Source: Ophelia neglecta
Taxonomy: Eukaryota
Length of the DNA stretch: 64,000 nucleotides
Direction: 5' to 3'
Assembly: GCA_965285935.1 (NCBI GenBank)
Contig: OZ260662.1
Coordinates: forward strand, 63,922,001 to 63,986,000
Both the position numbers and the translations under genes were made by a program. This document shows, piece by piece, positions 606 through 36,000 of this stretch. Numbering within the stretch: the first letter of the stretch is position 1; each line of letters starts with the position of its first letter. The notes beneath the pieces were generated by a model. It saw only the letters and a list, made by a program, of their open reading frames with translations, was not told where the DNA came from and ran no database searches.

Positions 606-752
606 AACACATATAACATGCCAAGCACTTATAATATGACACATATAACATGACAAGCATTTCTAATTATAACATGACAAGCATTTCTAACATGACATAT
701 AACATGACAAGCACTTATAACATGACACATACAACATGACATGCACTTATAA
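606..752. repeat. Degenerate minisatellite (~20-30 bp units built on ATAACATGACAAGCACTT) downstream of SLC12A9
   Basis: Repeated AACATGACA/AAGCA(C/T)TT motifs visible about 6 times. Confidence 0.8.
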
Positions 753-2026: not shown

Positions 2027-5000
2027 TCACAGTGTTGTAGACGTGACAGGGAAGAGACCATGGACAAGGACTGTCGGGGGGAAGTCCTCGGTCAGTTTTG
2101 TCAGCTGGCTGAGGTAGTGTACTTGTGTGCTTTCATCTTCTGGTGCTTTCGGCAGATAACAGAATGTGACTGCTGTTTGCTGACACTGGTTTCTAACCAA
2201 TTCATTAACTGCTTGTAGGTAATTATCGGGAGTTTGTCCAGCCAACATATTTGAGTGATGATAGTAATCTGAATCAGACTCAGTGGGAGAATCCTCTAAT
2301 TGCTCTGTTACATTTTTCCATGTGACCATTTGAATTTTGCCAGGGATACGCAACTGTCTTAATAAGTTTGCTAACTTCACCTTTTTCCTTTCCGTGTCCT
2401 CAGATGGGTTCTCTATACACATGAATATTCTTAGTTTAGTTTTACTTTTCCAACCAGGAACCATGTGAAGTATGCATGCCAACTGCAGCATGAACAGACA
2501 GGTGTTGTCAAAGTAGTTGGCAGTGTCGGGCCTGAAAAAGTTCACAGGCCAAACATCTATATACATCCTATCTTTGCCATTACTACTCTTAAATACAGCC
2601 TCTTTATCTAAATTTCCAAAATGCCTAAAGAGGCAGACATTTTTACTCAATTTGACTGCATCATATATCATATGCACATAGTCTGTGATGGCAACTTTTT
2701 TCTCATCATTAGATGTGCGCAGCAGTGGAAAGTGATCATAGAATTCTGTATTGTCTCCTTCCGGGTCAAGAATTGAGCTATAAAATCTTTGTCGACGATT
2801 CCGCTTTGCTTTCAGTTTAGCAAAGGAGTCCTCTGGCAGTGCATGATCATAGAAGCCCATACATATTGTGTTAGGTTTCATTCCTCCTAAGCCAGACACC
2901 CTGATCAAATGTTGCATGCCATTCCTAACACTATCTGCCAAGGTTAATTCAATGAACGCCTTCACTTTGAGGTAATCCACCAAACTCTGCCACCTGCTGT
3001 AAGTAGATTGACATGGGTCGTCGGTCTCTTTGTCCAAGTCTCCCACCTCTACATGGCCCAAAACATACAGCCCCCCCTTCTTCAGGTCATTTACAAAATC
3101 TATCAGTTCACAGTTAGCTCTTGGATTGGCTACAAAAAGTAAGATCTGAGGTCTCCAGAATTTCACATGATCTTTCCTTCTATCCAACATCAAAAGGTAT
3201 TTCCTCACCTAAGAAAAATTGTTCAAATTTATTATCAATTCAAAGCACTAAAATGCTAATATACATAACAAATGAAAATCCCAGCAAAATTATTGTTCCC
3301 CTGTATCTCCTTTAAAAGGTGTTCCCTGACCTGGTGGAATATAAGAGCTTGGCTTATTGAACCCCATGTGATTGGGAAGGATCTCAGATGAAGGACAATA
3401 GCAATGATCAACACAGCAACAATGGCTCCAGAGGCATACTCTACACTGATAAAGAAACACATAACCATACAGCCAAGCATCCCCAACAGAGACGTGTGCC
3501 ATGAGAAGTATTTAAATGTTGGCCTGAAAAAGAAAAACATAAACGTTGAGGTGGAAATACGCTTCTTTTTGGATCATATTTGTGTACTTTTAGGCCCTTA
3601 TTTGTTAAAATGATGACAAATGATATAATAGTAAAACCAAATTGGCATTGGCAGCCCAATGTAGCCATAGGAGCTGGTGTGAAGAAGCATTATCGGGCCA
3701 CAAAGTATGTTAAATAACCAGAAACTTGAATTTCAAAAGTGGGTTATATTCAGAGGCATAAATAACAAACACTGGGACATTACCTGAAATTTGGTGCTGA
3801 TGCCAGGTCTAAGGCCAGGCAGGCTAGATTTGTAGAGGCATAGGACAGCAGAAAGAGTTCTGCGGCCATCGGAGCTATAGCGTTGAGAGAGCCTATCAGC
3901 AGCACAACCTGGTTAAACAACAGTCAAATAAAGATTTTCTCCAAAAAAAAATGGCACACAACTTGTGATGTAAGGGGTTTATTATTTCTTGATAATTTTT
4001 AAAGCTGAGTGCACTCACCTGAACAAGGCCCCAAGATATTAGAACTGCTACATATGGATTTCCATTTTTAGTAGTTACAGTAGCTGGCTTGAGAAAAACC
4101 CCTGCAATAAGCATATTAATTATAATCATAGAAATATAGAAGGGTAATTACTTACTGTAAATCTTATGCATCTTGAGGAAATGTAGTGAAGTAAAAACCT
4201 ACTTGACTAACTTACAAAATAGTTCATCCCTTGCCAAAGCTTCCAGCACTCTTGATGCTCCAATGAGATTGCCCAAGGCCGCTGACAATGTTGCAGCAAA
4301 TATGCCAATGACAACAAATGGTGGCCAGTAGTTTATAGATTGAAGATAATTATAGTTGTTGACAAGAAGCTCCCTGAAAGTATAAAGGAACCAGAATAGG
4401 GCTACATATAGTGTCCAAATATAATTAAATATGGTCGTGTATTTTTCTAAACCACTTGGATCAGACTTTAAAAGCAGATTTGACTGAGAAATTGTTTATT
4501 TAGATCTATATTTTCAGGACCACCATGTCTCATTTCCTTGTATAATTCATAGGGAGTAAGGAGGTTGCAAAAGCAATGTATTTGAAACTTTTTGCCAAAG
4601 AATATTTTGCAAAGGTTTAGTTTCTCTTTGGGCAAGACATGTTATATCCTTATTACTTTGTATTATACCGTACAATTATATCTTAAACATTTAGCAACAA
4701 TTTTAAAAATTACCCATGCACAAAATTTTGTTGCACATGATATCATTAGACAATGTAAGTTCAGTTAATACTGATTATTTTCAAGAGCTATTTTGTTAAT
4801 TTAAAATGTTAATACCTTAGTTTATATGTTGATGAAAGGAAACAAATTGTATTACCATTCACAAGTGAAAGCTGTGAAGAATGACAAAACAATGTAGATG
4901 GCGAGCGTGAATGCTGCGGCTGATAAGGTGCCTTTTGGAATGGCTTTACTTGGATCCTTGAGCTCACCTACATTTAAAAGGAAAAGACCAAAAATGATTA

Positions 5001-8000
5001 GCAGCATAATTTACCAGAAAGGGCAGACACCAAACCATTTGGATTAACAATATATAGATAAACCGAAATAAAAGAGGCATGATATATTGGTCACTTTTTT
5101 CTATTGTACTACTTAATTAATCATATTCATCACCCTCAGGGTCTATCCGATGAATGCCAACAGAATACAAACAACTTTCCTATATGCCCCAATACATTTT
5201 GAAAGCCAGCCTAACTGCTCAAATAAACAAGTAACACTGGGCCTGAAGTAATGCTCCATTTGTTTTCTCTAGCCCCAGCAACTCCAATTTTTCTCAAAAA
5301 CTAATCATTCCCAAGGAGGTTTGTGGTGCTTCCTGCCCTTCAATTTCAGCTTTTTTGTGCTATCTTGTTTAGACACGTTTTGAGTTACACCATGTTTGCT
5401 AACTAAGATATCAGTAGTACACCTAGTAAAGCTTCAGTTTTTTCTCACATAAACTTGGTCAAAACATTTTTTTTATTGGGATCAATCAAATAATGCAGAG
5501 CTCTCCTGCAGTTTCACCCTAAAATTTATTAATTATATGTACCATATTCTCAGTAATATTTGTGTGACCCAAGAACGCTTTAGAAAAACTGAAAACCTAC
5601 CAGTAGCCATAAAGGCTAAAATGGAAGGTTTTGTCAGAAGAAAGAAGGGGGGTGCTTATTAAGGCATGGGCGCTTATTACAAAATTAATTTGGTTGCATA
5701 TAAGCCTTCATTTACACTTTTGAATTGAAAAGATTCAGCTTCCCGACTTGTACACCCCTCAGGTATTTTTTCTGATAATTATCATGCAAATTCTCAATTA
5801 TCATGCTAAAATTTATTTTACTAACCTGACATGTTAGCTCCATTCATAATACCAGTCACACTGCTAAATAACACAGCAAAAACACTTGCAAAACCCATCT
5901 TATTGCCTGCTATGTAATCAATGGAAAAGTGTGCTAGAAAAAAAAATGTAAAGAATTATTTTCAGATGTGTTAAGACTGTGACTTTCATTAAAATAAATC
6001 AGATGCATTAGTGAAACTGATGACCAGTGTTCACAAGCTAAAACACACAATATTCATGTGCCTAAATGATCCAGGAGGTGATTGTTGTCAGAAGCATTAA
6101 CAAAGAAGTGAAGGGTCAAGATGGAGGTGGCAACAGTGTACCAATTAAACCAATTTGTACATTTTCCCATTATAATTATGCACTATATGCTAATTATCTG
6201 CAGACTTTAAATTCTGTTATTATGATTATCCACCAAAAACTCTAGAAAGCACAGAAAATGCAGCTCAGGTAGAAGCCAATTTATTAGCCCTGCACTCAGC
6301 CATAAAAAGGGAGCAATTTAACTTATATTCCATGTACCATCACAGAGATACAAGTTCCAACAGGAACACAAAGGATAAACTGTTAACTCCTAAGATTTAG
6401 GGCTATGACCTAGGTTAGAGTCGACAGAACTACATCCATTTTTACTCGCAAAACTACAAATTTTAATAGTTTTTGACCGCTAAAACCAGCAAAAAGAACT
6501 AAATTGTGGATGTTATTTATATATGTACGAATAGAAAAAATAAAATTGGTCATTCAATCCAACATGTATTATTGATATACTAACTAAATGTAGTTAGTTG
6601 GTTAATATGAAACAACAAGAACAGGGCACCTACGGAATAAATTGCTGACAAATGTGTCAGTATTGAAGCCAGTAAAGTTAGCAGTCCAATTTCCACAGCT
6701 TTCTGAGGATTCATTGAGACTGGCATTAGCATGAACCACTCCTGTATTGGATGATGGGAACGGGATACAAAGAACAGACTGACCGATCATACTCACTACC
6801 ACAGACAATGTGCAAACCACCAAAATCTGAAATTAGTCAAGTTGCAGAGACAAAAGTATAAATATATTTTAAAGCTGATGATTTGATGAATAACAAAGTG
6901 AATTATTTTAGTACGCATTGATATACACAAAAAGTGGATTTTTTTACTAGTTTTCAGAAACCAGCATACCTTAGATTAATAAGATACACATTTATCACAA
7001 CATTTGCATGGTTTCCTTGGCTTATCTCACTTGGGCAGGAGTATGCCATTTTTTTGGGGAAGTTTATGAATTTAAGTGGTTTGCAGCCAATTGATGCACA
7101 TCATAAGCTGACTGCATGATCTAAGTTTAAAAACTGCTGCCAAATTGTAAACAATGTCAAGAATGTGCCAACAAATTATGCATTTTTAGTACTTATTAAT
7201 ATTGTTTTTTATTTTATCACTCACCAATAGGATGAAAACAGACGTACGAGCAAACATAGCAGCCCCAATAATGCATACAAGCAGGCAGAATGCTAGCACC
7301 ATGGAACAGTACAAGTAGTTCCACCATCTGGTACCGCCTGGAATACCTGAACCATCCCCTAACATACTACCTGAAACATGAAAAACACATTGTCATCATC
7401 AAAGTTCAAATTTATTCCTTGCACCATTAGACATTACTATTTATGAAATTACCAATCTAAAACAACAGCTTATCTGTTCAATAATTTAATAATTGAAACC
7501 TAAATTTGTTTTTCACTTAGGCATGACATACTGTATACTGGGGCACTTTTATTTAAGTTAGTAATGATGATTATGATATTCTAAATAGTTTTTAAGGAAA
7601 TACAACTAAAGCATACCTCCGGGTCCAAAGTTATCCACTACCCCTTCAACAAATCCAGTAATGTATAATGCACAACTAAATATGTTTGCCAGGAAAAAAA
7701 GGAGTCCAATACTTCCTCCAAATTCTGGACCAAGAGCTCTGCTAATCATATCTGTTAGAGCTGTCAAGGCCTTACAACTGTATCACTAAAGTAAACATAT
7801 ACCCGGTACACTTATATGTACAGATACTCTACCACAATACATGTATGTGTTAGGAACTTCATTCACCACTTAGTAGGGATGGGTTAGAAGTCTGGGGCAG
7901 CACCCAGCGCCCATTCAAAATGTCAAGCAAGGCTGATTGTGAAAAGATAAGAAAAAAAACCTTTTTTTGGAAGTTGAATTCCACTAAACACACATGACCC

Positions 8001-11000
8001 TATACCCTCCTCTACACCCTCCTCTCTCTCACAAATAATAACCCTTCTCATATCATCTATATTTTTCAGGATTGTTTTAATAAAAAAAAAGCTGCATATG
8101 GTCAGTGGTTAATATCTTATGATGAGTCCAACATAAAATAAATACTTTTAAGTAAAAATGCATCTTATGTTTTGTTACTGTGACCTATTCAATTTATACA
8201 TAGCTGAGCCGTGTACATGTAGCTCAATATTGTACGTAATTGCAATGATAAAATTATATGTATTACAGCTCTAGACAATAGTTGAATTTATTACTGTATT
8301 TTAATGCATTGTCTGCAACAGGATTTAAGGATCTCAGCAATGGTAGCAGTAGCTATGTTTGGACTACTCTGTTAATACAATGTATTAGTTTTTACTTGGG
8401 ATGAACCCCCAACCCCACTGTACATCTCAATTCTTTATCCTCTCCATCACACACCTTTGCCCTCCACCCGCTAGCAGCTCCATTCTGGAATGAACTAAAA
8501 TATTTGTATGCATCCCCCATGTACCTGGACTCGTTATAGGACAATAAAGGCATGAGTCATACCTTGATATCTGCACTTTTTCAGGTAAACAATGAGATAA
8601 TCTTAATACATGTAGACACCCAGCACTTGACTTACTACAGTAAAGGATATATCTAACAGAGGAAACACAAAGCTGAATCATGTCAATGACAAATCCTGTT
8701 GAAAAAATAAATTATATTTTCTTCTTTTTGAACATATTCTATGAAAAATTTCTGGTGTTACAGAATACTGTTCATTATTATATTCCCAGTGTTACGGTAA
8801 ATGAAAACTTTCGTGTGTGCTGATTAACATGACTGCAGCCAGGGCCTCTTAATAGTGGTTTTAAAACTGAAAAAAGGATACAGTATGCTCCACCACCTTC
8901 TATGGCACCATTTGTGGAGATCGCACATATTGAGAGAATGGTCAGGTACAAAATAATGTAGGCCAGTGCAAACTGCAGCAGTGTGTATAAAAGCCCAGCA
9001 TTTCCCACAATGAAACCTGCAAAATAGAATAATTTCAATCATTCTGAGCTTGTAGGATAAGATAAAATCAAAACATGGTAAGGATCTGACAAGTGATTGC
9101 TGGACTGCCCAGCACAAGTAAAAATAGAAGTGGGACTGTGAATTTTAGCTTCATTTGCATATGTCATAAGCGATAGATTTTAAAAGTTTGGTCAGGTCCT
9201 GCATTGTAAAGTAAGATTTAACAAAAATATAGTAAGAATGGGACCAAATCAATATAACTAGGCTGTATTTTGCAAGAATGAATAAAAATGGAAAATGCAG
9301 GAAAATTACATTGTGCAATAAGCCTGAAACAGTCAAAGTATCAATTCCATGTGTCTGGAACTCTTATTGAGGGTGTATCTTAAACAGTAGACCAACAAAC
9401 GTGTAATGTGCTGAACATTAAACAGTTAGGTAAGAATATGTTAAGAACACTTTATACAGAGATGAAAAAGGTATTACATGCTTAGGTGATCATTCTTTGA
9501 TTCCTTGTTTTACAATCCCGCTAATATGCAGCATACTGGCCCGCTAAGAAAAAAGGTGTTTTTTCTAATCAGTGTTGCCTGTCAACAGTTTTTACACACT
9601 CTCATTGGCATGAAGTTTGTATCATAAAATCATATGGTTTTTTGATAAAAGATAAGGAATTCAGCAGGTATCTTTTAGACTACCCCTGGCCTGGGGTGAA
9701 TGACCTGACGATGAACTTGCAAACATTTTCATCCAGACTGACTGACTCATACTTTCTGGGTTCACTTGAAGTGAAAATTTTGGTAAAACCAAGTAATCAA
9801 AAAATGATCGCTTTAGCCAAATAAATTATTAACTGTTTTGTCAAATTTTATCATTACAAGTGGCTTTCCAGTCTCAATTCAGGATCTCCTGTACACATTT
9901 TTTATAGAATTGACAGGATTTTACCAAATATATGAAAGTTGCTCTAATAATTAACATAGCCAAAAAAAACCTATAAAGGGAATCTTCAACGCATAATCTA
10001 AATGTATTAAGTTAGGGTTTATCTTGTTCCTAACCAATCACAAAATTACTTAAATACAATAAATGACATTTTTAAGTTATTAATTTGTCAGGGTTGTTAA
10101 AAATATTATGATAATTTGTACAGATTGTATAAATTGTATTTATTTACAACATTTACTATGATTGCAATCAATGCATAAGGCCTACTAGTGGCTGGAAAAA
10201 AAAATCAAAAAAATCAAAAAATCATAAAGCATGAATTTTCGCCTTGATTTAAATCATGATTTAAATCACTGATTTAGATCATTTGATTTAAACCAAACAA
10301 CCTGTTATTGGTACATATCTTTTAACTATTCTTTGAACTCTTTTTCTTCCATTTCATTTCATATTTATAGTACCTTCCACTAGGGGTGGAAGATAACCAC
10401 TGGCTTACTTGGTATTATAGTTAATCTATGGTACAAAGTACAAAATTTTAAACATATCAACACACGAAAGGCTTATATATATACAGGAAACCACCACTTG
10501 AATTCTTATATAATGAAAATGAAAGCATTTTTGAAAATGATAAGCTCTGTGCCTTTGAGCTGGAGAACAAAGGATGTCCTGTCATGGCACATTATATTAG
10601 GACAACTGCATATTAGGGCTTTAACACAAGACTAAGTGATGTGGTGTCAGTAAGGTCCCTCTGTAAAACATGCCTTGAGCATGCTAAGGACATGAATCAA
10701 CTCAGCAATATGTACCGGTACTATTAAAGTATTATGTCTTGGTTAATATTCAATAAGATTTATAAGTGTATAGTATAACGATACATTTATAAGCATCATG
10801 TAAGATAATTTGACTGTCATAATTTAAATTGCATAGGTCATGTGTATCACATGCTGAATATCGAGTTACGCTAAATTTAGCAAGTCAGTTTGGAAGACAA
10901 TTGAAATGGTGCGTCATTGAAGCATTAAACCAAACATTAAGGTATCATTTGTAAGAATAATATTATATGTAAATCCCGTAGTTTCTAAGATACAGTACAG

Positions 11001-12943
11001 GTGTTCATGGACCTCCAAACAGGAAATGATGCCTTCTTCACATGGCGATGCCGTAATCAATTTTTTTCTAACGGAAACCAGAAGAACCAAGAAAAGACTT
11101 CTTCCTTAGTCCTGTAGTTTGTTGTTTTGACGATAGGGCACGCCAGAAATAATTTATGATGCTGTGAAAGCTGTGATCGTTATCGCACCACTGACAAATT
11201 GGTCTTTCATATTATTTGGTTCAGACATACAGTTAAAACCGACGTTTAAATCAGCACTGCACAGCTTCCTAGACTCCTACCCCCATAACAAATATTTTAA
11301 ATGCTCAAACACTGGACATCGTGGAGGGCATACGTACACACTTACTCGTTTATCACCATATCACTTTTTATAAATACTGTCCTGTGTCTGTGGGTCAGTA
11401 TCTGGATATGGATCACTCCGCGCATACTAGATGGGGGTTCTGGTCCCAGATCAAAGCTTTGAAAATTGACATTTCCCAGTTCTCAGTGAAATACCGTATC
11501 CGACCGGGTTAGCGCCCAGGGCGTTAAAATTGGCCGAAACGCAAAATTTGGGGGTGGGCGCTAACCCAGACATGGGCGTTTAGGGAGCCAAAAACCTTCG
11601 GCAGGTGTTTGATAATATGGACTGGGTTGACCATGACAGAATTTTCTGGAAACGCTGTACTACTGTACACATTGCGCCACCTATCGGAGTGATGTCATAG
11701 AATGGTGTCGTGTGCATGGTTTCAACTTGAGTAATACGTCACTGCTTCTGCCATAAATTGTGATGAAACGCACAAGTTAAAATCACGGAGACCACCTGTT
11801 CCATTTGATGAACGAAGTAAACAAGATTTATTGCAGATTGTCAAGCTGTTATGGATTAGGAGTGGAGGTTATTATGATGGACCCTCATTATCAAAATTTG
11901 CTGCCAGAGTTGCGAGTTAGTGAATACTGGTTTTGTCAATTTGTGCACTCAATTAGTAACATGGAACTCGTAGTCTCGTACTTGATGAAAAATATGAGGG
12001 GATAATCAAAGCTCAGATCACGATCTGGGACTGGTTGGGGGTGGGCGTTTAAGCTAGTTCTGCCCAAAATGGGGGGTGGGCGTTTACACGAACATGGGCG
12101 CTAACCCGGTCGGGTACGGTATATTGAAATTTACGAGTTCCCAGGAATTACTTCGTTCCTGGAGACTGTAATAACAGAATCCCAATTCACAAAAATAGAA
12201 ACACAGTTGTGTATTCAATATATCAGAATCATATTTCTTTAAAAAAAAATAATAATCCAAGCCCAGGTAAGTGTTATAGGAGCTCACTCCAGGTATTTTG
12301 TTTCGTGACATCCTGGGCATGACGTTCCCAGCTTTAAACCGCAGTTCACAGGATTTTAACTGTTAACTGTCATTCCCAGTTCACGGATATTTTAAATGGG
12401 ATTTCCCGTTTCCCAGGTATCTTCTGAGCCAGATCTCGAATCCCGGGAAATACATAATTCCCAGTTCACGGACATATCAAAGTTCAATTCTAGTTTAATC
12501 CCCCCCCCCCCCCCCCCCGAGTACTGTCTCAGTGTGCCCAGTTTATAAACATGTACATCCAATAGGGCATTAAATATGTAGCCCAACTACCGTACATTGA
12601 AGCATACTACTATTAAAGGTGTATATTCATATAGTTATATCCCCATACACTCACCAAGACGGAGAAATAACACCGTGCTGAACATAGACAATGCAACAGG
12701 ACTAAAAACTCCGGGAAAAGTTCGTAAACTCCTCTGTGACAGTCTTTGGCCGTGGCGATAGTCAAGCGATAAAGTTCGGTTCAGATTCCAAGTAGAGCGG
12801 TCACCTCCGCCAAGCAATGGACGGTTTTCGGAGTCGTCTGTGACTGAAATATGTGTTTCTGCATTTGGGTTAATCGTTACTGGATCAGCCCCTTGATAAT
12901 TGTCTAAAATGTCCCTCATAGGGGAGGACCTTCCAGCAGCCAT
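2027..12943 (-). CDS. SLC12A9: Solute carrier family 12 member 9 (CIP1-like cation-chloride cotransporter), 12 coding exons, ~952 aa: 12655-12943, 8882-9016, 7617-7751, 7225-7370, 6634-6826, 5826-5933, 4856-4967, 4216-4373, 4019-4101, 3784-3908, 3331-3523, 2027-3208
   Basis: Exons join in frame through GT-AG introns (total 2859 nt). Family motifs: [118 protein letters not shown], and C-terminal VTSTTL. N-terminal dileucine ENRPLL. Confidence 0.95.
7752..8881 (-). other. U12-type (minor spliceosome) GT-AG intron between SLC12A9 exons 2 and 3
   Basis: Donor T|GTATCCTTTTT. Branch-like CCTTGAC (7769-7763) about 12 nt upstream of the acceptor AG, with no polypyrimidine tract. Confidence 0.9.
10089..10304. 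mobile_element. Degenerate hAT-like MITE
   Basis: Ends CAGGGTTG...CAACCTG, internal GATTTAAATCA repeats, flanks TAATTTGT / TTATTGGT (6/8, possible decayed 8-bp TSD). Confidence 0.45.
11494..12119. mobile_element. Non-autonomous Tc1/mariner-type MITE (CCGTA termini) in SLC12A9 intron 1
   Basis: 25-bp TIRs CCGTA(T/C)CCGACCGGGTTAGCGCCCA (1 mismatch), TA on both flanks, subterminal GGGTGGGCG repeats. Confidence 0.9.
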
Positions 12944-12986
12944 CGTTAAGCCAGTGTTATGATTACTGTTAAAATTAGGTCAACCG

Positions 12987-12996
12987 AGTCATGTGC
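12987..12996. promoter_or_regulatory. M-box/CLEAR-type MiT/TFE E-box just upstream of the SLC12A9 start codon
   Basis: AGTCATGTGC about 45 bp upstream of the ATG, next to a CRE-like GACGTCA and upstream G-rich, CpG-rich sequence. Confidence 0.45.
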
Positions 12997-15019
12997 GGCT
13001 AGACGTCATATCACGAGGTTTGTGACACAGATGCATAAAGGACAAATAGAAAGGGGGATTCCCATTTAATGAAGCGGGGGGGGGGGGGGGGGGAAGGATT
13101 TTGCCGGGGATTTTGTGGGTAGGAGACCTACTAATAGAGTGTTTAGTATTTATCGCCGGGCCGGGGAGGGGGTGGGGGGCGGCGACATGCAACAAATTAT
13201 TATCGGCCCGCACCTAAACTGCTAAAAGACGGTGGGTGTATAAATGGGTCCCCTAAATTATGAGGGCCTCCGGGCATCGCTGGATACGATTTTTAATGCA
13301 TACTCTGCTCGCAACGTCAAAGACATGCTGGCGTTGTTTTTTCTAAGCCTTCCTCGGACCGCGGCGTCGGCCCCTGCGCTAAAGAAATCCGACATCATCG
13401 TGGCCACGTTTGCTTCGTTTTGGCAAAAAATTGAAAACTTTAACATATATTGTAGTGACCCATCTCCCTTGTAGGATCGAGTATGGTAAAAAGATGTGAA
13501 CTTGTACCCCTTAGAGGGATGACACATTTTGGATAAATTACCATCTGTCAATATTTAAAGAGCGTTATTGGTACGTTTGTGACTCCCAAATGTATAGGCC
13601 TACAGCAATGCGGGCGGATTTTTTGTAGGCCTACTGAAACTCTCAATCGGGAAAGTTCTATAGGCCTACCTATGAAAAAATAGTGACGACGAATTGGGCG
13701 ATCCGGTTATAACATAAGATGGCCAAGCCTATCCTTTCTTTTTATCAAAATTGAAAGTTTGATTTTTCACACCCGAATAGACATTTGATTGTACCCAGGC
13801 GGCATGTATTAAAATGTGTTTTAACTTGTCTTATAACCGACTAAGACACCCTATTGTCATGCATTCATGTTTTCAAAATTGATCAAAAACTTTTGAGTGA
13901 TTGCCCTTATAGATCTACTATTTTGTATAAAAAAGTGTATCGGCTTGTGCTTCTTCTGACTATAGTCCTATAAATTTGGGACAAAATAAAAGTTACACAG
14001 AGACAAGTTCATCTTCATGCTGGCAAAACGAACGTAGAAAACATAATTATGCTTTCCAGGTGGGGGAGAATCTGTGCGACTACGTCAACGGCCCGTCAAA
14101 GGCCGTGGTCAGCCGAGACCTGCCAACCAATCAGGAACGCAGTCGGCGTTTAATTACTGCGTCTGCGCTCGAGGCTTGGGCGGTTATAAGTAAGGGGACC
14201 ACCGTGATCGGCCTTTTCAGTTATTCGCGTACTGGGAATTTAAAGTTTAATTTATTGTGAATCGGGATTCGACAAATGACCGAGGTTCGGGATCAAGGAT
14301 TTGAATTCCGTTACTAGGGAATCACTATTTTAATTTTTCGGGAAGCGGGAAATATACCTTAGGCCTATCCTTATTGGCATGAAAAATGCAGACTTTAAAC
14401 ATTCGGGATTTGTCCTTTTTCAAACTGGGAACTTGGACCACCCTTACCTCCCATCATAAGTGATAATTTAGTTTAGGAACGAACACGTTGCATCCAAGAT
14501 GCATCACTAGGCCTATCTATATATAGATATCACATCTATATATATAACAATGGACCACTGTTCTTTGTGCCAGGCAGGGCACGCATGAACATCACTATAG
14601 CGGTATATCGGACCAATAAATCCACGGCAGCCGCGGTAAATCCGCGGCAGCGGGGAAGCCCATGCGCAGCCGCGGGGAAGCCCCGGTGCAGCCCCGGAGA
14701 CTCCCGTGGCGATTAAACTAACCAATCAGATTTTGGCTATCATATGCTTTCGGATGCATTCCAACTTTAATATTTTGAAAATTCATACATGCAGCCGTCA
14801 AACGACCACGCACGTCAAACTTGGAACCAAACCATCACATGTGAGAATTTATCACCTAGTTCATTATATGGCCTCCAGGGGTCAAGCCCCGTAGAGCTAA
14901 GCTGGACTGTGGCGAGGGAGTGTAATAATTCTGGTTCTCTGCGCATGCGGGACCTTAGGCACTCTATGCTTAAAGTATAGCCACTCCACGGGAGTTACCC
15001 GTAAAACTGTTTAATACGT

Positions 15020-15180
15020 GGGACCACCCCATTCCGCACGTATGTATTTTCTTGTGACTCGGTAAAGTGGGTGTCCTGCAGACATATTATTTGGTCGCCT
15101 TTCGTTCTTAAATGATTAAATACATCTTTCCTTTCAACATAATCTCCCAGCCCGCGACAATTCTGAGACATAATTTTCAT
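15020..15180 (-). pseudogene. Fragment of L1/Tx1-clade ORF2 apurinic-type endonuclease N-terminus
   Basis: MKIMSQNCRGLGD...RKDVFNHLR...IICLQDTH, followed by a frameshifted EWGG. Confidence 0.75.
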
Positions 15181-15370
15181 TGAAAAGGACTTAGGCCTAT
15201 CCACTGTAGGCCTAGTATTTGCTAAACTGAACATAAATCAACCATGTTTAAAATATTTTGAATAGAGGGCCCATGGAATAGATATTCCAAATTAAGACGG
15301 AAGTTGTGCCAAGCAAAAAGAAATACATGTAGGTGCAAAGTTTAGAAGAACAAAAGAAGCTCAGTTTATC

Positions 15371-15397
15371 CATAGATATGTATTCTCTATATCTATG
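15371..15397. mobile_element. 27-bp palindromic micro-element with perfect 7-bp TSD
   Basis: GTTTATC|CATAGATAT-GTATTCTCT-ATATCTATG|GTTTATC. Confidence 0.75.
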
Positions 15398-16358
15398 GTT
15401 TATCTCAGTAGCGCACACGCCCCAATTGCACTCGTTCAGTACTAGATGATGTTAGAAATTGATGAAATGAATTCAACTGATTTCCATTCTTATCTTCCAG
15501 AGGATTTGTTGGGGGGATCGCTGCCAAAAATGGCAATGGAGGCAGTTGGTAGGGTGTTGGATGTTAGGGGGCGAATCTCACAAGTTTGAGACCGCAGAGA
15601 GAGAATAGGCTCTCAGGAAAAGATTGTAGTATCATGGCTTGTGATTGGCTGCTTCACATTATTGGGCGGGCCTTATTCTACAGACGTGCGGTTGACCCGA
15701 GGCAGCCGCGGGTTTATTGGTCTTGCCGGCGCGCGGCTGCCGCGCGGCAGTCGTGTGACAGTCCCGGGGAGCCGCGCGGCAGTCCCGGAGCAGCCGCGCG
15801 ACAGCCCCGCGGCCTCCCACCTGCATCCGCGGATTTGTTGGTCCGATATACCGCTATACATCTCATACAGTGCGATTAAAGTTAATAAACCTGTGTTGGC
15901 CCGGGTAACTTGAAGATATCGACTGTTTTTACAACTGTTCCGTTCGTAGTCCATATCGGTATAAATTTATTTGAGAGGATACTCTAGGAAACAAAATACA
16001 CTATTTGTTGATATTAAAAAGCTGACAGATTCCGATACAACATTATTTGTTGGTATTAAAAAGCCGACAGATTCCGAAACAATACACTATCCCCACATCT
16101 TTCTACGTGTTTCATCTTGCCTAGGTTTCCCGTACAGCCTACCTAGACTACCGCGTAACATTTTGATCATGTAAACGTGCCTGATTCAGAGCCTTCTATT
16201 TTAAAGATACTTATTTACCACATACTAAAAATTTATCAATCTAACAACCTACCTGTAACTTGTGAAGTATGACGCAAACTATAAAAAGACAAACAATGGT
16301 GTTTTCATCTATTAAAGGGTTATAGATGAAAGAATAATATATATATCATATATTATTC

Positions 16359-18467
16359 TACCCTTCGCAGCAGAGGCTAATGCTTATCGCATAGCTTCTC
16401 CGCATCACCCTCTGCCGAAAACCGAGGGAAATTTCCGAGAACTCGGAACTCGAAAACGAGGCCGTTTGACGTCATACATGGGGAAAGCCCTTTGCTACAG
16501 GCGGAGAGCGGAGCTGTGTAGGTTGCAGTGACGTAATAGGACTTTCCCCATGCAGTGGCGCCCCCTGTTGGGCTGTTCTAGAGCTTTCAGGACCGATAAA
16601 AATATCTGGTTATCTGGCCTGTGATTGGCCAAAAAAGCTAGACGAGCTGTATAGCATGCTGGACTATGTGTTATTTATAAAATAGACTTAAGGTCTTATC
16701 ATTTAGGAATAATTGATAGACGCATACTGGTGTTGTTGGCGCAATGGTGGCCATGGCAAAGACATGTCACACTTTTTGCGCGGCCCATTTTCGGAGGCCG
16801 GCAGCCATTTGGACGTAAAGAGAGGAAAAAATGATCATTTCTTTAAGCTCACGTTGAAAAAAATTTGCCAACTAATGCTATCCTCATTTTTTGATATGTT
16901 GTTGCCTTAACTGGTGTCTTTCAGCGACACACATCAGCTAAGCCCGAGCAATATCGTGAATAGGTGATAAACGACCAGCAAGGCACGCGATTTAACATGT
17001 AAGAGATAGGGATTTTAATTACGTCCCTGCAACCTATAGCAGGATTAGGCTGATTTGGGCATTTTTGGCCAATATTCCTATAAATTTTGCCAGTTTAGCA
17101 GAAGGGAACACGAGAATTTACTTCTTTTGGAGCTTTTAGGGTATACCGAGGCAGTCGACCCCTTTCTAATAATGTACGGAGGACCAGTAGGGCCATAGGG
17201 TGGTATGGGCCAAAGGAAAGGCGCAGCGGGTAGGTATGATGGCCAGTGATGGCCAAACTGACGCCCTTTTTCCTTTCTTTGCAATGTAAAGCATGTGTAT
17301 TCTGATGCACACATTCACATGAGGCGTAAATCTTAGATCTACGCCCACTGGATTTGCCTCACATGTATTCAGCATGGATGAGTGTATAAACAAAAACGAT
17401 CAGTGGCGTTTCTCGTGTTCCCTGTAACCATGGCAACTATGCTGACAGCACAACTATGATGGCAACTAAGCGCTTATCATTTTTATTTGTGTCTTTTCAA
17501 CTGTCTCTTGTATCTGGGTGTTCGCGGAGGTAGTTTATGTCGGTTAACTACAGAAAGTATGGCCACAGGCTGAGCTTATTAGCAGTGTGGTTACCATGGC
17601 AACAGTCGTCATAGCAACGGACATTATGTAAATTCTCGTAGAGTATGTTGGTGTGGTTGACTGACATGCTCAACTGTGTTTGAAAACATAACTTGCAGTG
17701 CTTGCTGCATGACAATGTACATTGGCAAGCAGCATTTTCACGATGCAGCAGGAGGCGTCTTCAGGGGGTCCATTTGGGTCCGTGCCGAGAAGACATACCA
17801 TTTTGGAATAGCATGAGAGGGTCAAATATTTCATAAGGGTGCAATAAAAGTGGTTGACTTTAAGTTGAAATAACCCAGAGAATCGATTGAGCTCATAAAA
17901 TTGGCAGGTTTTTAGAGTTTTTATTGATTTCAGGTTGCAGTGACGTAATAGGACTTTCCCCATGCAGTGGCGCCCCCTGTTGGGCTGTTCTAGAGCTTTC
18001 AGGACCGATAAAAATATCTGGTTATCTGGCCTGTGATTGGCCAAAAAAGCTAGACGAGCTGTATAGCATGCTGGACTATGTGTTATTTATAAAATAGACT
18101 TAAGGTCTTATCATTTAGGAATAATTGATAGACGCATACTGGTGTTGTTGGCGCAATGGTGGCCATGGCAAAGACATGTCACACTTTTTGCGCGGCCCAT
18201 TTTCGGAGGCCGGCAGCCATTTGGACGTAAAGAGAGGAAAAAATGATCATTTCTTTAAGCTCACGTAGAAAAAAATTTGCCAACTAATGCTATCCTCATT
18301 TTTTGATATGTTGTTGCCTTAACTGGTGTCTTTCAGCGACACACATCAGCTAAGCCCGAGCAATATCGTGAATAGGTGATAAACGACCAGCAAGGCACGC
18401 GATTTAACATGTAAGAGATAGGGATTTTAATTACGTCCCTGCAACCTGTACTCTGCTACGAAGGGAA
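16359..18467. mobile_element. Short TIR element (~180 bp when empty; Academ/MULE-like 9-bp TSD) that hosts the long-direct-repeat element below
   Basis: TIR CCCTTCG(C/T)AGCAGAG at 16361 and 18451-18465. Flanks ATATTATTC / ATATAATTC (8/9). Related diverged sequence at ~22297-22410. Confidence 0.6.
16521..18446. mobile_element. Non-autonomous element with two 514-bp long terminal direct repeats (16521-17034, 17933-18446), each bounded by its own TIRs; KolobokP-like architecture
   Basis: The repeats are near-identical (one mismatch seen). Each begins GGTTGCAGTGACGTAAT and ends ATTACGTCCCTGCAACC. The whole unit is flanked by TGTA on both sides; the inner flanks are TATA and TTCA. Confidence 0.8.
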
Positions 18468-19052
18468 ATATAATTCCTACTACAAACATATTGCGCCTTA
18501 CAGTATTGTCTACTTGATAAGCGAACAACAATATAGGGCCTACAAAGGTTATCGAGGGGAACTAGGCCTATTAAAGACAAGAAATGTTAAGAGTAGCGAC
18601 AAGGAAAAGTTTGCGATACCCGATGATTTGCCTTCTTTCGTCTACAATATCCGGTCAAAAAGTGTCTTCATCATACTTATTAAATAGCCTTAAATTGTAG
18701 ACTCTACCCATGCCACTAGTGAAATAATGTCCCGTGGGACATGCGATCAAGAACCTTTGTAGGTCGAAATTTGCCCAGTATTTTACCAGAGACTAAAAAG
18801 AACCCCACCTTTACTATTCCCTGTTTCACAAAGTTGAGGATCAATCGCCTATTGTTTTTTATAGGCCTAAAACGGTAACATGCTCCATGTGTGACAACTG
18901 GACGGACGGGTGCAATTTTCTTTATTTTTTACAAAGAATACCTACTATTTTAACTCTATAAGCTACTGCTTAACCCATGGAGACGTCTTAAAAAACTATA
19001 CAAATTACTTGGCGTGATTTGAAAATTCTTTCTCTAGGTTTAAAAGCCTGTA

Positions 19053-19229
19053 CAGTGTACCCTTTGTTTGTGGTCACCTGTGTAATAAAGTCACCTGTCC
19101 ACTAAGATCAATAAATAATAGTCCCATTCATGTGTTAAATGACTTGCCTATTAAGGTCATCTAATTAATTTGATAATGTGATCCGTTTTTTCCAGTCCCT
19201 TGACAGACCTGATTAGATAGGTTTTACTG
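19053..19229. mobile_element. Pogo/Tigger-like MITE (copy 1)
   Basis: TA|CAGTG...TTTTACTG|TA, internal GGTCACCTGT repeats; homologous to 24365-24543. Confidence 0.8.
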
Positions 19230-19684
19230 TATTTATACAGATAGCATTTCAGTTTTGTAATCATTCTATTTGTTAGTGATGCATGGTAGGTTTGTGTTCC
19301 ATCGAATCCCGTCTGGCGTCTTTTTTATATGATGTATTTCGTTTGGGTCTGCTGACCCCACTTGTCATTTATAGTTTCATTTGTGTTTAAATCGTTTGAT
19401 TAATGACATTATCTAATTTCATATGTCGCATGTTATTCATTTGGAAATTCTTTAGAACATTATGCATTTGAGATAGGCCAAGCATACTTTTAGATCCTCG
19501 GCAGGCGCATTCACATAATAGCAACAAGGTGAAATGTCTTTTAATAGATTAATGAGCTAACTATTGAATTCATATATAAATGTGACCAATTAATATTGAC
19601 AGTAAACGGCCTTCAGAGGTCGAGTCTACGTACGAGCCCACTAGCCGGCGTGAAAATGTATATATGGACCAAGTTGCATTTATG

Positions 19685-20106
19685 TACAGTTGCTGGATAA
19701 GGCCACCTAGATTTTATTTTTTATCTCGTTCCCTCAAGATAGGTATCTCGTTCCCTCAAGATAATATCTCGTTCCCTCAAGATAATATCTCGTTCCCTCA
19801 AGATAGGTATCTCGTTCCCCCATGAAAGGTATCTCGTTCCTTCAAGATAATTATCTCATTCCCTCAAGATAGGTATCTCGTTCCCTCAAGAAAGCGTGTG
19901 TCATGCATGGTTTGTTGAGCTAAATAGCAATATATATGTTGGCTAATTTAAGGAACTTATTAACTATTTTGAGAGAATAAGATACTTATCTTGAGGCTAC
20001 AAGATACTTATCTTGAGGGAACGAGATATTATCTTGAGGGAACGAGATATTACCTTGAGGGAACGAGATAAAAATAAAATCAAGGTGGCCTTATCCAGCC
20101 ACCGTA
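19685..20106. mobile_element. Foldback-type MITE with inverted arrays of a 20-21 bp subterminal repeat (TAC-terminal, IS3EU-like ends)
   Basis: TIR TAC(A/G)GT(T/G)GCTGGATAAGGCCACC. About 8 TATCTCGTTCCCTCAAGATA units on the left and inverted units on the right. No TSD recognised. Confidence 0.8.
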
Positions 20107-20282
20107 GGTTTCTACCACATCTATATAGTGGTCTATAGGAGATGACCTGATGGCAGTCAGCCAAGGAGTTAATATATGCTGATTTGTTCTTAAAAGGTTA
20201 TTTTCCAGCCAACAGTAAGTGGCATCAAAACAGATTTTAATCAGAACAGATCATTTGGTGCCCTCGATGAGCATATACCTAC

Positions 20283-20526
20283 CAACTCTTTGGAACAAAT
20301 TGGTGCTTAACTGGCCTAAAGCAACACTAGCAAATACACCACCGATCCATCCTAGATTCCTCCGCTGTTTCTCCTGCGACATCGGCCCCATACTTAAGCT
20401 GCGGCTAAGATCGAACACCCTGGAAGAAATTAGTGGTGTCTTCTCCGAATGCGAGGACAAATGTACACTGCCATCCTCTGGTACATTGATGGGCCGGTAC
20501 CGGACTGAGTCTATCCTTTCCCTCAT
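20283..20526 (-). CDS. SLC12A9: Alternative (duplicated) first coding exon of SLC12A9 encoding a different N-terminus and TM1
   Basis: ATG at 20526; MRERIDSV...SEKTPLI...DLSRSLS...RNLGWIGGVFASVALGQLSTNLFQRVG aligns along its length with exon 1 (MRDILD...SENRPLL...NLNRTLS...[27 protein letters not shown]). It ends G|GTAGGT in the same phase 1 as exon 1. Confidence 0.75.
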
Positions 20527-22296
20527 ATTTCTGCCTTCTGATGAATTGATGTTTTGGCTGCGGTTTATCCTCACATTGGCTGTCAATAGTCTATCTTTCT
20601 GTTTCGTCTGCACTTTATCCTCACCTTGGCTGTCAATATAGGCTATCTTTCACAATGTGCCTGACAATGGTAAACAACAATGGTATCAACCTGCATCTAA
20701 CCTCTCGCTCTCGCTTTAAGCTTATATGGATATGTATACAAATAGTTTCAAGTTTAGGCCGTTAAGCGGATCATTCGTGTTCAGTTTAATATGACAGGCA
20801 GCCCAGATGTTTGCAATCGTATCTTCAGAAGATGGCGGTATAGCTAAAGGCTACGGTGTTATTCAACAATTTTAGAAACGATCGTCTTAAAAGCGTGTCT
20901 TATATCAATCACAATGGTCAGTCATATCCTACTTATCTCACTTGGGATGTACGACAATCAAGGACAGCTTACTTTTGACAAATTAGTACCAAATTCATCG
21001 GTCAATTCAACTGAACTCCCCGTTGAGGCCTATATCCATATTGTAATAGTTATATGGAACTAGTTTTAGCCTATATTATGGAAACTCGTGACGTACGTCC
21101 TTGTGCTGGGTTGCAGTCCTTAAATAGCGGTAAAAAACTAAGAGCCATCAGCAAATGTCGGCGTATAGCTGTATAGGCCCAGGCACATGTTTGTCCTGCT
21201 ACTTTAGCTATAGCTCGATAATAAATAAATGATTAAGAAAATCTCCTATATTCTGTAAAGATGATGACCTAACTATTTAATTCATAAATCACCTTTATGA
21301 CAATGATGGCCTCACCATTGATTTAATTCAAAACTTAAGATAATATCAACAAACCCAGTGAATTTATCACGGTGGAACATCACAACCTCAAGTGAAAGCT
21401 AGGAAATCGAGGAAATGCCACAACATGAACATGTCCGATGATCGCCATTTATTATTAAATCGATATTCACGTGATTCATGCACCTAGCAATCTAGTTGGA
21501 TTTGGCAAGCCAAGTAAACGGGCCTATGTCGTTCATGATATTCGTGTTCACAAACACTGGGCCTACAGGCATTGGCCAATTCGGCACTTTTGTCATGTGC
21601 ACTTTCTCTTCAAGTCTTAAGCAGTTGAAAGTTTGATTTTGCTGCTTAAGTCACGCACCCATTTGCAGTTAGGCAAAAATATTTATGGTATGACTGGGCG
21701 TATAACCAACTTCCCCATAAACAGGAAAGCAGTTAAATTATACCTACATATGAAAAGGGCGGGGTGGGGGCAGTTTTGGAAAGGACAGAGTGGAGACTAT
21801 TTGATCCCCTCCAATCCCCTCCCCATTTTATTACAGCGGCAATCAACCCCCTCCCCCCCCCCTCCCCCCCAAAAAAAAAAACGCCTCTAGTAGGCCTAAA
21901 TGAGCCAGCAATAATTTTTCCCATTTTAAAAATTATCGCTGGAGCATTACGAAGTGGGCGCCTCACGAAGGAGATGCCAAGTAAAGGTGGGGCGTAGAGA
22001 GCTAGGCCGAAGTGTATTACAAACAAGTGTCTTTAAAAAGACATATTGCACTCGGCAGGCTTAAAACAGGCTGAAATGGATCCCGTGTCAGCTCTGTGAG
22101 TGTATTATGGATAGTAAGTAGATATACATGGTCAGTTTGTCCAATAGCCAAAGGTTTTACTATTAATAATAATTATAAAGACTATTTGATCATTAGCTGC
22201 AGTCAATGCAACGTGACACAAGTCTGAGGTCAAACGTTCATTTGAAACCGGCGACGGACAAGGCTGTCTAACTGTGTACATAGTAATCATGCAATC

Positions 22297-22410
22297 AGGC
22301 TAATGTTCTTCGCACAGCTTCGCTGCATTACCCTCTGCCGAATGTCGGGGGAACGATATCCTGGAATATGAAAACAAAGCAGTATGGCGCGACTCGTGAT
22401 GATAGCCCCA
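22297..22410. mobile_element. Diverged relative of the left arm of the 16359 TIR element
   Basis: AGGCTAATG..CGCA.AGCTT...GCAT.ACCCTCTGCCGAA is shared with 16374-16420. Confidence 0.55.
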
Positions 22411-24364
22411 TTTCTATTAAGGCGTGGTCACACAGCCAAACTAGCACATAAACGCATGAATCACGCATTAGAATTTGGTTGTGCGTGCCTGTCCGTCGAT
22501 AACTCGAAATTTACCATGCAGATCGCATTGGACCTTACACAAACTTCGTCCAGAACCGACAACATTGTAAACCGCCATATGATCCGTAAAACTGTAAACT
22601 TTGAACACACCTACTCAAAATCTATAACTGGGTGACTGTAATGGAATTGCAGATATCTCACGTTCCAGGTATTCATTTCGTTGGTATCCAGTTCAATTTC
22701 GTGTACTTGTACTGACCTTGGCCCTCTTAGTCACCGAGGCGCGCGCACGCCGCTGGGTCAAAATTGAACAGCCAATCAGAGAACGGCTTGCCCTCGCTCC
22801 GGTCCTGAGTGGGGGTTGGCTTGAATGGACGCCAATTAGCAATAGGCTACAACATAGCATAGATTCAGCCAATCAGATGCATGGCGTGCATACTGAGATA
22901 AATATACATTGTCAACGATCTTCATGTGTAAATAAGTCATTCATTTTTTTAGTAAGTAGCATAGCATTTTGTCACCAAATAGTTTACCATCTTATTTTGT
23001 AATTGAGACAATAATAAATATTTTCTCAAAGAAAATTAGTAAAATTACATTTTTAAGGTACTACTTGCTTAAATGACAAGTAGATGGATGGTATTTACAG
23101 TGTTCAAAGGGGGTAAGCATATTCAATCGATATGCTGAAATCCGAGCTGGTGAAGGTGCGTTTGATAACTTTTATCCAATTGCTAATATAATTAGCTACA
23201 AATACATATTAATGAAATATCGCAACAAGTGTTTTTAAAAATATATTTTACTCACCTAGACGCTATAATGGCCGCTTATGGCAAAACGATTGTCATGTTA
23301 TACCCTAATAGGGGGGATTTATCCAAATTTGTCAAAGTTCCATTTATTGGCAATTGGAGCCCTTTTAGATGATAGAATAATATTTTTGTTTTTAAAAATA
23401 ATAAATTTAAACCACCCCAAAGTATAAGACTAATGAACACCCAGTTGGGACAACCACTTCTCAAACCTACCCTCTTTGACCTACCCCTGTGACCTCTGAC
23501 TCTACCCCTATGTGGTCTCAATATCCCTCATAATTGCCCTTGAATCCACACTCACAAATAATAAAACTTGCAAATTTACATAAATCTGCCTGCCACCCAC
23601 CCTAGTTATATTACGTACTCCACTATACCCAATATTAATAAATTAGCTTGATGAACTACCTAATCTGCTTGGTCTTCCGATCCCCTATTATCCTTGACAC
23701 AGTATGCACCCTAAATACCCCATACAACCATAATCTAACATAATTTCTTCTGGGACCACCTCCCGGAAATGCTTTGTCCCCCAGATATAAGTTTGAATAC
23801 CCCTATTGCACCCGGACATGCTATTTGAGAAACACCCCCTTCTGCAGGACAGGTGGTTTTTTTTTACCCTCCATATCCAAGACAGCTGTGCATCCCCCTT
23901 CCTGGAGGACAATTTCTAGAACAGCCCTTAAAGCATATTGGCCTGGGTAATTTGTTTGTGATAGATCGCGCCACGCTAGTGCCTATACTACTTCTTCTAC
24001 CGCACTATATTTAACAGGATTTATTGGATGAATGGTTTAGAAGCACATTCATATTGCCAGAAAATAATCACTTAATGATTTCTTTTCTGAAATTAACTTA
24101 CATTGCTGCCCTAAGCTTGGATTCTTACACCAAAAAATACTTTGGCTAGATGGCCCAGTTGATGGCACCCTGATGAACACACAACATTGAATGTTAAATG
24201 TAAAATATTGTTTTCCACTGAAATGTCACACATATTTTTAAACCCTTTATTTTCTTGAGCCCTTTACTTCATTCACGAGCAGGGTCAAAATCACGTAATT
24301 AAAGGGCCCAAGAAAATAAAGGGCCTGCAAGAAAATCTTGTAGGAAGCTCTAAAATGCAAATTA

Positions 24365-24543
24365 CAGTGAAACCTGTGTTTGTGGATACCTGGGTAGTGA
24401 GGTCACTTGTCCACTAAGGTCACCAAATAATAGTCTCCTCCCATTCTATTCCTGTATTGAGTAACCTCCATATTAAGGTCACCTGTATAATGTGGGCATT
24501 TAATTCCAGTCCCTTGACTGACCTGATTAGACGGGTTTCACTG
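24365..24543. mobile_element. Pogo/Tigger-like MITE (copy 2)
   Basis: TA|CAGTGAAACC...GGTTTCACTG|TA; homologous to 19053-19229. Confidence 0.85.
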
Positions 24544-24793
24544 TACATGTAAAAGGCCAGTGTAATCCTGTAAGTTGTGTTTTACAACCCCAAATATTCA
24601 GGGCCATGCAATAATTATAAGGGTTTTACAATACTTAAAATGCTTTTCTTTTTTAAGGTTCTTGTATCAAGCCAGCCAGTTGATTAGTCCATAGGAGTAA
24701 TGTGCCATCTGGCTCTCTGTAAGAACAGAAATAAAATGTCCCAATCCCTAATTTCTCTCAGTAATAATATTGATATCTCTGGAACATTGTTTA

Positions 24794-25133
24794 CCATCAA
24801 CACTTGGCCGAGAGGTTAGGGTGTCAACCTCGCAAGTGGTAGATTGAGGTTCAAATCCCAATCCTGTCAAATCCTGTCAAAGTAAAACTAGGTACTGATA
24901 GCTCCCCTGCCAGGCGCCCGGTATTTGCGGGCAGTATCAGGACTGGTCAACCCGGTGTCAGTATAATGTGACTGGGTGGGGTTCCCTGTCTGGTATCTAA
25001 GGCAGGTACTCCAGTGATGCAGCACTCTAAGGAGCACATTGAGCCCATTGCCACAAGTGAGCACCATGGGGATATGACCATACAAGTGTTTAAAGCCATG
25101 TCAAACCCCAACCAACCTACCTACCAACCAACC
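24794..25133 (+). mobile_element. tRNA-derived SINE (central domain resembles Meta/MESC-type SINEs)
   Basis: A-box TGGCCGAGAGG, B-box GGTTCAAATCC, central GGACTGGTCAACCCGGTGTCAGTATAATGTGACTGGGTGGGG, simple (CCAA/CCTA)n tail. Confidence 0.75.
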
Positions 25134-26193
25134 CAGGGCAATTATCAATGCCTGATTTGTGGTGCTGATTTATAACCCTTACAAATAAACAAACAAACTG
25201 GATTATAATTAACGCTTTATTCGACCTTCATATAACTTATATATTGTATTTTAATATATACTTCTTTGTAATTTAATACTGTAGTAGACAAAGGGAAAAA
25301 AAGTTCATCAAGGATTAACTTGGCCCTTTTCGAAAAATACACTTTGTGTACTTAATCAGGGACTAGAGACATGCATGCAAATGTATTGTATTGAAGTGTT
25401 TCAATTTTGCAACAATTGTTTTATTATGATATTAGCAAATTTAAACCCAGGCAAACATTTTTTACCCTTACATTTGGCAAAGTCCAAAATCAAACTGGCA
25501 GGAAGGCCTTTCCATGTTGTAAACATTTGTATAACAATAAATACCCTAGATACTTCTGCAAACAACAAATGATCAGAAAATTCTCCATCAGAAAATTCTC
25601 CAATCTAAATAATACATCAACAACAAAACATATAACCCTTGGCTAATAGGGCCTACTCTAATACAAATATAATTTTGTATATCTTCAAAGTAAAAATAAC
25701 CAACATTATTAATTTATTATATCTGAATCATGTAATTGATAGGCTGGTATATTAACTTTCAAATGCACACATAATTTTGGTCTTAAGCTTTAAAAAGTAG
25801 AGCCACTAGTGTACTTCGGCCTTCTAAAATCTGGCTTAAAAGAGTAGCAGACAGTGTAAAAACATATCACCCCCAAACCCAAAGGTAACTAACAAGTCTC
25901 TTTTTCATTGATTGGGGGTGGACATTGGTCAGCAAATTTTGCATGCTGATCCTTTAGCTGAATTACTCTTAATTTTTCTGCTTACCAGGTACTTGTAAAA
26001 AGATAGTTTTTTTTCTTCTTTCATTTTGCATTGTTATATCCATATTGTACGGATCCTAAACAGTGACCTCAGAATAGGCTACAAGATTTCTCTAGAATTT
26101 TAATTTGATTTGGACTAAATCTGTACATATGTGCATGAACATTTGCCAACCAAATCTGAGCATACAATCATTACTTTTCTTTAGGCGAATAGA

Positions 26194-26480
26194 TTGGTCT
26201 ATCAAAATCTAAAATATTTTATATTCTCCTAAAATATAATATATCCTATAAACATTGGGTCATCAAAGATAGCATATTAAAAAAAACTTTATGACAATGC
26301 TGACAATATGTAGGATGTTGAGTAAAATCAGGTGATAGCTTGGTCTATCAAAATCTATAATATTTCCTATTCTCATAAAATATAATAGATCCTATACAAA
26401 TTGGGTCATTAAAGATAGTATATTTAAAATACAAAATGACAATGATGAAAATGAAATATGTAGGATGTTGATGAAAATCA
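26194..26480. repeat. Diverged tandem duplication (~146 bp x2) in the 3' flank of Dispatched-like A
   Basis: TTGGTCTATCAAAATCTA...TAGGATGTTGA..AAAATCA occurs at 26194 and 26340. Confidence 0.8.
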
Positions 26481-26589
26481 CACACACAAATACTTTCTCA
26501 CACACAAAATTATAATGTACATGTATATTCGACACCTCCTGACCTTCCCTTAAGAAGCAGGAAGATTAATATTTGAACAATAAAAGTAC

Positions 26590-35972: not shown

Positions 35973-36000
35973 CTGAAAATTTTAAGAAAGAATCCATTTC

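Follow-up and report, generated by a model that had tools for sequence, protein, structure and literature searches.

The window analysed here, by which we mean the whole stretch of 64,000 nucleotides, carries on its minus strand a gene of the SLC12 transporter family whose first coding exon is present in two copies. We call the copy closer to the rest of the gene canonical exon 1 and the more distant one the alternative exon 1. The features discussed below are the following.

20283..20526, minus strand: alternative exon 1 (alternative first coding exon), ATG at 20526, open frame of 81 codons
20277..20282, minus strand: donor gtaggt of the alternative exon, directly 3' of the G at 20283
20564..20637, minus strand: 24-base direct repeat, present twice at a spacing of 50 bases and lying 40-110 bases ahead of the alternative ATG
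14995-15234: LINE endonuclease-like frame between the exon-1 copies
12655..12943, minus strand: canonical exon 1, ATG at 12943, ENRPLL tail and SMFST-type first transmembrane helix (TM1)
8882..9016, minus strand: shared exon 2, acceptor ttttgcag|GT at 9016, encoding the end of TM1b and TM2
2030..8881, minus strand: later shared coding exons (approximate), open frames matching the orthologue in contig L003
within 7609-7782, 7189-7392, 6605-6832, 5824-5955, 4855-5010, 4202-4495, 3899-4147, 3783-3923 and 3259-3573, minus strand: individual later exons (approximate), frames matching L003
2030-3208, minus strand: last exon, 393 aa, SLC12 C-terminal domain
26590-29466, 43355-46288 and 60581-63631, minus strand: single-exon Patched/sterol-sensing-domain paralogues (dispatched- or PTCHD-like), 958-1016 aa
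33600-38800: fuller LINE copies (reverse transcriptase and endonuclease frames, partly duplicated), within the region 33400-38800

The three Patched-like paralogues stand in tandem upstream of the transporter gene, and the one at 26590-29466 is its next upstream neighbor. The 7.3 kb separating the exon-1 copies (13000-20280) are inflated by repeats, the corresponding distance being 1 kb in L003 and 0.43 kb in L004; contig depth is very high at 17400-18600 and 19000-19400.

Since exon 2 corresponds to positions 15-63 of the Pfam AA_permease domain, the beginning of the permease core, TM1, comes from exon 1. In Pfam, four exons match PF00324 (AA_permease) and the last exon matches PF03522 (E 9e-27), and the last exon also finds solved SLC12 chains with E-values down to 3e-19. 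Among the 120 matches listed for the last exon, all names that give a function are SLC12A9 or a generic SLC12 C-terminal domain, and the vertebrate, arthropod, and Ciona relatives are 41-50% identical. Assigned by named matches and domains, the gene belongs to the SLC12A9 (CIP1/CCC6) branch of the SLC12 cation-chloride cotransporters, with AA_permease (APC/LeuT-fold) and SLC12 domains. It is a single-copy gene: the 762-Mb genome holds one copy of the SLC12 C-terminal domain of SLC12A9 and exactly two exon-1-like sequences, namely the alternative and the canonical one. Neither exon-1 peptide matches Pfam when searched alone; the searches in this analysis used one exon at a time.

The alternative exon encodes a cytosolic tail of 55 residues, containing EKTPLI and an xLSRSLS motif, followed by a TM1 of its own type. 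Within the open frame no other in-frame ATG precedes its start codon, which lies 7583 bases from the canonical one. At 20283 the exon breaks off in phase 1, one base into a Gly codon, and canonical exon 1 ends on the same Gly residue in the same phase (ctt g|gtgagt). Joined to exon 2, either donor rebuilds that Gly (g+gt), after which the frame continues as Phe-Ile-Val-Gly-Asn-Ala-Gly. An earlier, sequence-only reading of this DNA had proposed an intact ATG-initiated exon about 7.6 kb upstream of exon 1 that stops at the same residue and phase with a good donor (here G|GTAGGT) and can be spliced to exon 2 at 9016. All of this holds, the last point as splice compatibility, and the TM1 strings and the EKTPLI and ENRPLL motifs that it quoted match the sequence as written.

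That the two exons are related is equally clear. A single BLASTP comparison aligns 88 residues of their peptides at 32% identity (E 1e-8), in line with the proposed homology along the whole length with strong divergence. Both open the alignment with M-R-[DE], and both have an acidic dileucine-type motif (EKTPLI in the alternative and ENRPLL in the canonical exon, as the same reading had noticed, although this is a match in sequence only), and xLxR[ST]LS ahead of a hydrophobic helix. When all minus-strand frames of 1-13000 were compared with 13001-26600 by tblastn, the two exon-1 copies formed the sole pair (E 3e-8), and no relics of other SLC12A9 exons were found within 13001-26600. The copies are adjacent, homologous, of similar length, and on the same strand; the alternative exon is a true and old duplicate of exon 1. 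If the alternative donor were spliced to the AG that precedes the canonical ATG, a stop would follow after five codons, and two TM1 helices would break the fold; the two exons should therefore be mutually exclusive.

Three independent sets of DNA reads from the organism contain the alternative exon as well; they belong to a single study and were the only runs that a search of public data returned. Contigs from these reads (approximately 10-30x, mapped on 17400-23399) run over the alternative donor unspliced and are thus genomic. Among the variants listed none falls in the alternative exon and many fall in its flanks, the listed contig pieces covering the exon only partly. The 24-base repeat just upstream of the exon reads attgacagccaa[g/t]gtgaggataaa, and its second copy contains a CCAAT at -53. 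The pair is a possible promoter-proximal element, and no counterpart of the repeat or its CCAAT was found upstream of the alternative exon in the other species.

To place the arrangement in a wider context, we turn to public contigs, where both exons occur in six species: that of the window and those of L003, L004/L005, L007, L008, and L010 (contigs L003-L010 are from ENA ERZ25069296, ERZ25083882, ERZ23498638, ERZ25069859, ERZ25767047, and ERZ24900295). A word search with the alternative exon returned two related open frames, orthologues that are 74% and 67% identical, and an exhaustive profile search together with a second word search added about 45 more alternative-like frames on many contigs. 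In all six species the alternative exon precedes the canonical one on one strand, at distances of 0.4-9.6 kb in the five besides the window.

L003 (66-kb contig): alternative exon 10073-10321; canonical exon ending at 11592, in a frame that is open from 11283; about 1 kb apart
L004/L005: alternative exon 529-798; canonical exon ~1290-1611; about 0.43 kb apart
L007: alternative exon ~10073-10220; canonical exon ~19651-19851; 9.6 kb apart
L008: alternative exon ~10145-10400; canonical exon ~18153-18395; 8 kb apart
L010: alternative exon ~10118-10304; canonical exon ~19067-19342; 9 kb apart

In L003, one syntenic Patched-like orthologue (3570-6422) lies upstream, as in the window, and is followed by both exon-1 copies and then by all later SLC12A9 exons; exon 2 is 83% identical between the window and L003. 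The six species are distant from one another: the C-terminal domains are 54-75% identical to that of the window overall, with 75% for L003 and about 55% for the L008 and L010 contigs, compared with 41-50% for vertebrates. At all nine alternative-type loci examined, a donor of the form GTAGGT, GTGAGT, or GTAAGT follows the first base of the Gly codon, and the residues read through past this donor are unrelated between species. The last 27 residues of the exon are invariant at 26 positions among the window, L003, and L004, and most orthologous alternative exons have a dileucine-type motif, E/D-x-x-P-L-[IVLM] (EKIYLL in L007). One further contig (L006:454-721) holds an alternative frame with no ATG ahead of the conserved tail and a pyrimidine-rich stretch before it; in that species the exon is possibly an internal one, or translation may begin at a Met farther on.

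In a maximum-likelihood tree of tail plus TM1, sequences group by exon type and not by species: the alternative/canonical split appears in 100% of the bootstrap trees, and a single clade (support 98/86) unites the canonical exons of the six species. The duplication is therefore older than the six species. The exon-1-like sequences of gastropods form a clade of their own in this tree, with Batillaria (L011) standing apart from the alternative exons. No second exon-1 type was seen within 10 kb of the Batillaria frame (L011:10001-10408) or in the DNA examined of the gastropod-like contig L012. In the annotations of Batillaria attramentaria and Nucella lapillus, exon-1-like frames appear as small hypothetical proteins in their own right (P0162, P0164, and P0168). 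A further protein, P0012 (95 aa, from an ENA contig of 1339 bases), has an alternative-type frame fused N-terminally to a bacterial LacI-type helix-turn-helix (PF00356); a chimeric metagenome contig or fortuitous read-through is the probable cause.

Pairwise comparison of the 27 TM1 codons gives similar figures for both exon types.

Alternative exons, 28 pairs: median pS 0.81 (saturated), median pN 0.154 (pN 0.03-0.26)
Canonical exons, 15 pairs: median pS 0.84, median pN 0.144 (pN 0.066-0.198)

In the alternative exons pN thus amounts to about one fifth of pS, just as in the canonical ones, and the 150 intron bases past the donor are no more similar than shuffled sequence. On these estimates both exon types are under purifying selection. 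The sequence-only reading had named a dN/dS near 1 or disruption in relatives as the signs of a relic; pN lies well below pS, and the frames in relatives are intact. Because frame, start codon, and donor have been kept in many lineages despite the divergence, the alternative exon is not a neutrally decaying copy.

The DNA upstream of the two exons gives some hints on how they might be chosen. Lysosomal genes carry the CLEAR motif as their TFEB/MITF site. In four of the six species the 300 bases preceding the canonical exon contain CLEAR-like sites (TCA[CT][GA]TGA), with 7 sites found against 0.35 expected from the background of the loci, for a motif that was chosen after being seen. These E-boxes take the forms TCACGTGA, TCATGTGA, and TCACATGA, and lie upstream of canonical exon 1 in the following contigs.

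L003:11283-11592
L004:1233-1611
L007:19552-19849
L010: ~18870-19015

Upstream of the canonical exon of the window no strict site was found, only near matches around 12980-13010; upstream of the six alternative exons there were none, nor was any promoter motif conserved there across species. This pattern suggests a separate lysosome-programme promoter for the canonical exon, located in the intron of the alternative exon, the latter being driven from elsewhere.

As for the product, the exchange would affect the middle of TM1. In zebrafish NKCC1, seven residues of TM1 (L219-M225) bind Na+, K+, and the first Cl- via main-chain atoms at the helix break (PMC9784483; see also PMC4301019). The type-specific residues of our two exons lie in mid-TM1, where canonical exons read L-S-M-F-S-T-[V/A] and alternative ones L-[G/A]-Q-[L/F]-S-T-N (V instead of N in one species). 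With the L-F-x-R motif as an anchor, which we assume to be equivalent, the NKCC1 heptad aligns ungapped to this stretch. Should this alignment hold, the exon types differ at four of the seven ion-site positions, the alternative type adding Gln and Asn side chains, and the isoforms would plausibly differ in their ion or substrate handling or in their kinetics. Solved SLC12 chains matched neither the exon-1 peptides nor an alternative-exon profile, the PDB copy searched holds no SLC12A9 structure, and the ESM Atlas look-alikes of the alternative exon, the best of which scores 0.84, gave no useful information. Human SLC12A9 needs its ExxxLL motif for lysosomal localization (bioRxiv 10.1101/2023.05.22.541801), and both tails keep a dileucine-type motif; both isoforms are therefore probably endolysosomal.

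Taken together, we find it quite likely that the locus is a single lophotrochozoan SLC12A9 gene with an ancient, selected, and mutually exclusive alternative first coding exon. Each exon 1 would provide a start codon, a cytosolic tail with [DE]xxxL[LIV] and xLxRSLS motifs, and the first transmembrane helix. The phase-1 donor of each would be joined to the shared exon 2, with one exon-1 copy per transcript. The canonical exon would use its own proximal promoter, with TFEB-type E-boxes in most species, and transcription of the alternative exon would begin at a start site farther upstream. Two full-length transporters would result, identical except for their N-terminal tail and TM1.

That the alternative exon is spliced to exon 2 we infer in two steps. 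Given that there is no room for further exons in L004 (0.43 kb) and that the window holds no partner exons, the alternative exon is not part of another gene, and it thus either joins exon 2 or acts alone. As its donor is conserved but the read-through tail behind it is not, splicing is favored over a stand-alone frame. In the protein collections (a profile search and a word search, with a 24-sequence alignment), alternative-type matches were short genomic frames reading into the intron, and no alternative-type protein continuing into exon 2 was found; such isoforms could hide in clusters whose representative has the canonical N-terminus.

Some other explanations deserve to be weighed. First, the choice could be made by splicing and not by the promoter, with a shared upstream non-coding exon and promoter, or with a further coding exon ahead of the alternative one. 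An AG following pyrimidine-rich stretches shortly upstream of both ATGs fits this idea, as do the L006 frame, in which no in-frame ATG precedes the conserved tail, and the close spacing in L004, which leaves scant space for a promoter. However, L004 is itself among the four of six species with CLEAR-like motifs directly upstream of the canonical exon, the conserved ATG is the first in-frame one in the window, and no upstream exon was identified. We consider a choice by splicing unlikely.

Less probable still is a small gene of its own, not spliced to exon 2 and encoding a single-pass membrane peptide made up of the tail and a TM1-like helix (e.g., a regulator or decoy of SLC12A9). The small hypothetical proteins of the gastropod annotations would be in keeping with such a gene, and all database products are short. 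Yet short products are what a gene caller makes of any exon left unspliced, the sequence past the Gly is unconserved whereas the donor GT(A/G)(A/G)GT occurs at 9/9 loci in the canonical phase, and the gastropod sequences form their own clade, their status as alternative-type exons not being established. Finally, the exon could be all that is left of a lost tandem paralogue, or a functionless exon duplicate in decay. This would suit the low identity to exon 1 (32%), the 7.3 kb with repeats and a LINE-like fragment between the exons, and the finding of DNA runs only among the public reads, but is very improbable in view of an intact frame, ATG, and donor in many species whose synonymous sites are saturated and whose introns are unalignable, of a pN/pS ratio near one fifth that the canonical exon shares, and of a tandem arrangement kept in six species.

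Returning to the single gene with an alternative first exon, a more far-reaching version may be put forward tentatively, and we would rate it as possible rather than probable: an ancient isoform switch between an NH4Cl exporter under TFEB/CLEAR control and a second isoform with another ion preference or compartment and a separate promoter. The ion-site chemistry of the two would differ through Gln and Asn side chains placed in the unwound center of TM1. Equally tentatively, such a switch would be older than the split between lineages that share only about 55% identity in the SLC12A9 C-terminal domain.

If the preferred reading is true, a conserved pair of TM1 helices in an otherwise identical protein would amount to natural mutagenesis of the ion-binding center, and comparing the isoforms could reveal which TM1 residues set substrate selectivity or kinetics. 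There is also a warning for annotation, as gene callers render the alternative-type exon as small orphan proteins and some gastropod annotations treat exon-1-like frames likewise.

The function of SLC12A9, lysosomal export of ammonium chloride, has been assigned only recently. The gene described here is orthologous by its named best matches to human and mouse SLC12A9, the lysosomal NH4+-Cl- exporter, with which it shares an N-terminal ExxxLL in the canonical exon, and the TM1 of vertebrate SLC12A9 resembles the canonical SMFS type. The earlier reading had professed no knowledge of an alternative first exon in this gene, and our literature search agrees, as it returned no description of an alternative TM1 exon for SLC12A9/CIP1, human and mouse included. 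Alternative first exons arising by tandem duplication are familiar as such; the SLC12A9 instance is new to the literature searched.

Within the SLC12 family, promoter-linked alternative first coding exons are found in KCC2 (a/b), KCC3 (a/b), and other genes. In contrast to the present case, these are known to encode cytosolic N-terminal residues only, and are not known to be homologous duplicates of each other or to replace a transmembrane helix. A closer parallel is NKCC2 (SLC12A1), whose variable exon is an internal cassette (exon 4) that encodes TM2 and is chosen by splicing. Its principal variants, the three called A, B, and F, are described as differing in localization and transport characteristics (PMC2790964). 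Both cases concern tandem homologous exons of an SLC12 gene that are used, in SLC12A9 probably, one at a time and that swap a helix lining the ion pathway. They differ in that the SLC12A9 exon is a first coding exon that brings its own start codon, sorting motif, and TM1, the choice probably being made by the promoter, and in that it belongs to the lysosomal branch and to invertebrates. Should the two isoforms indeed be made, SLC12A9 would stand beside NKCC2 A/B/F as the second SLC12 case in which transport is tuned by exon duplication.
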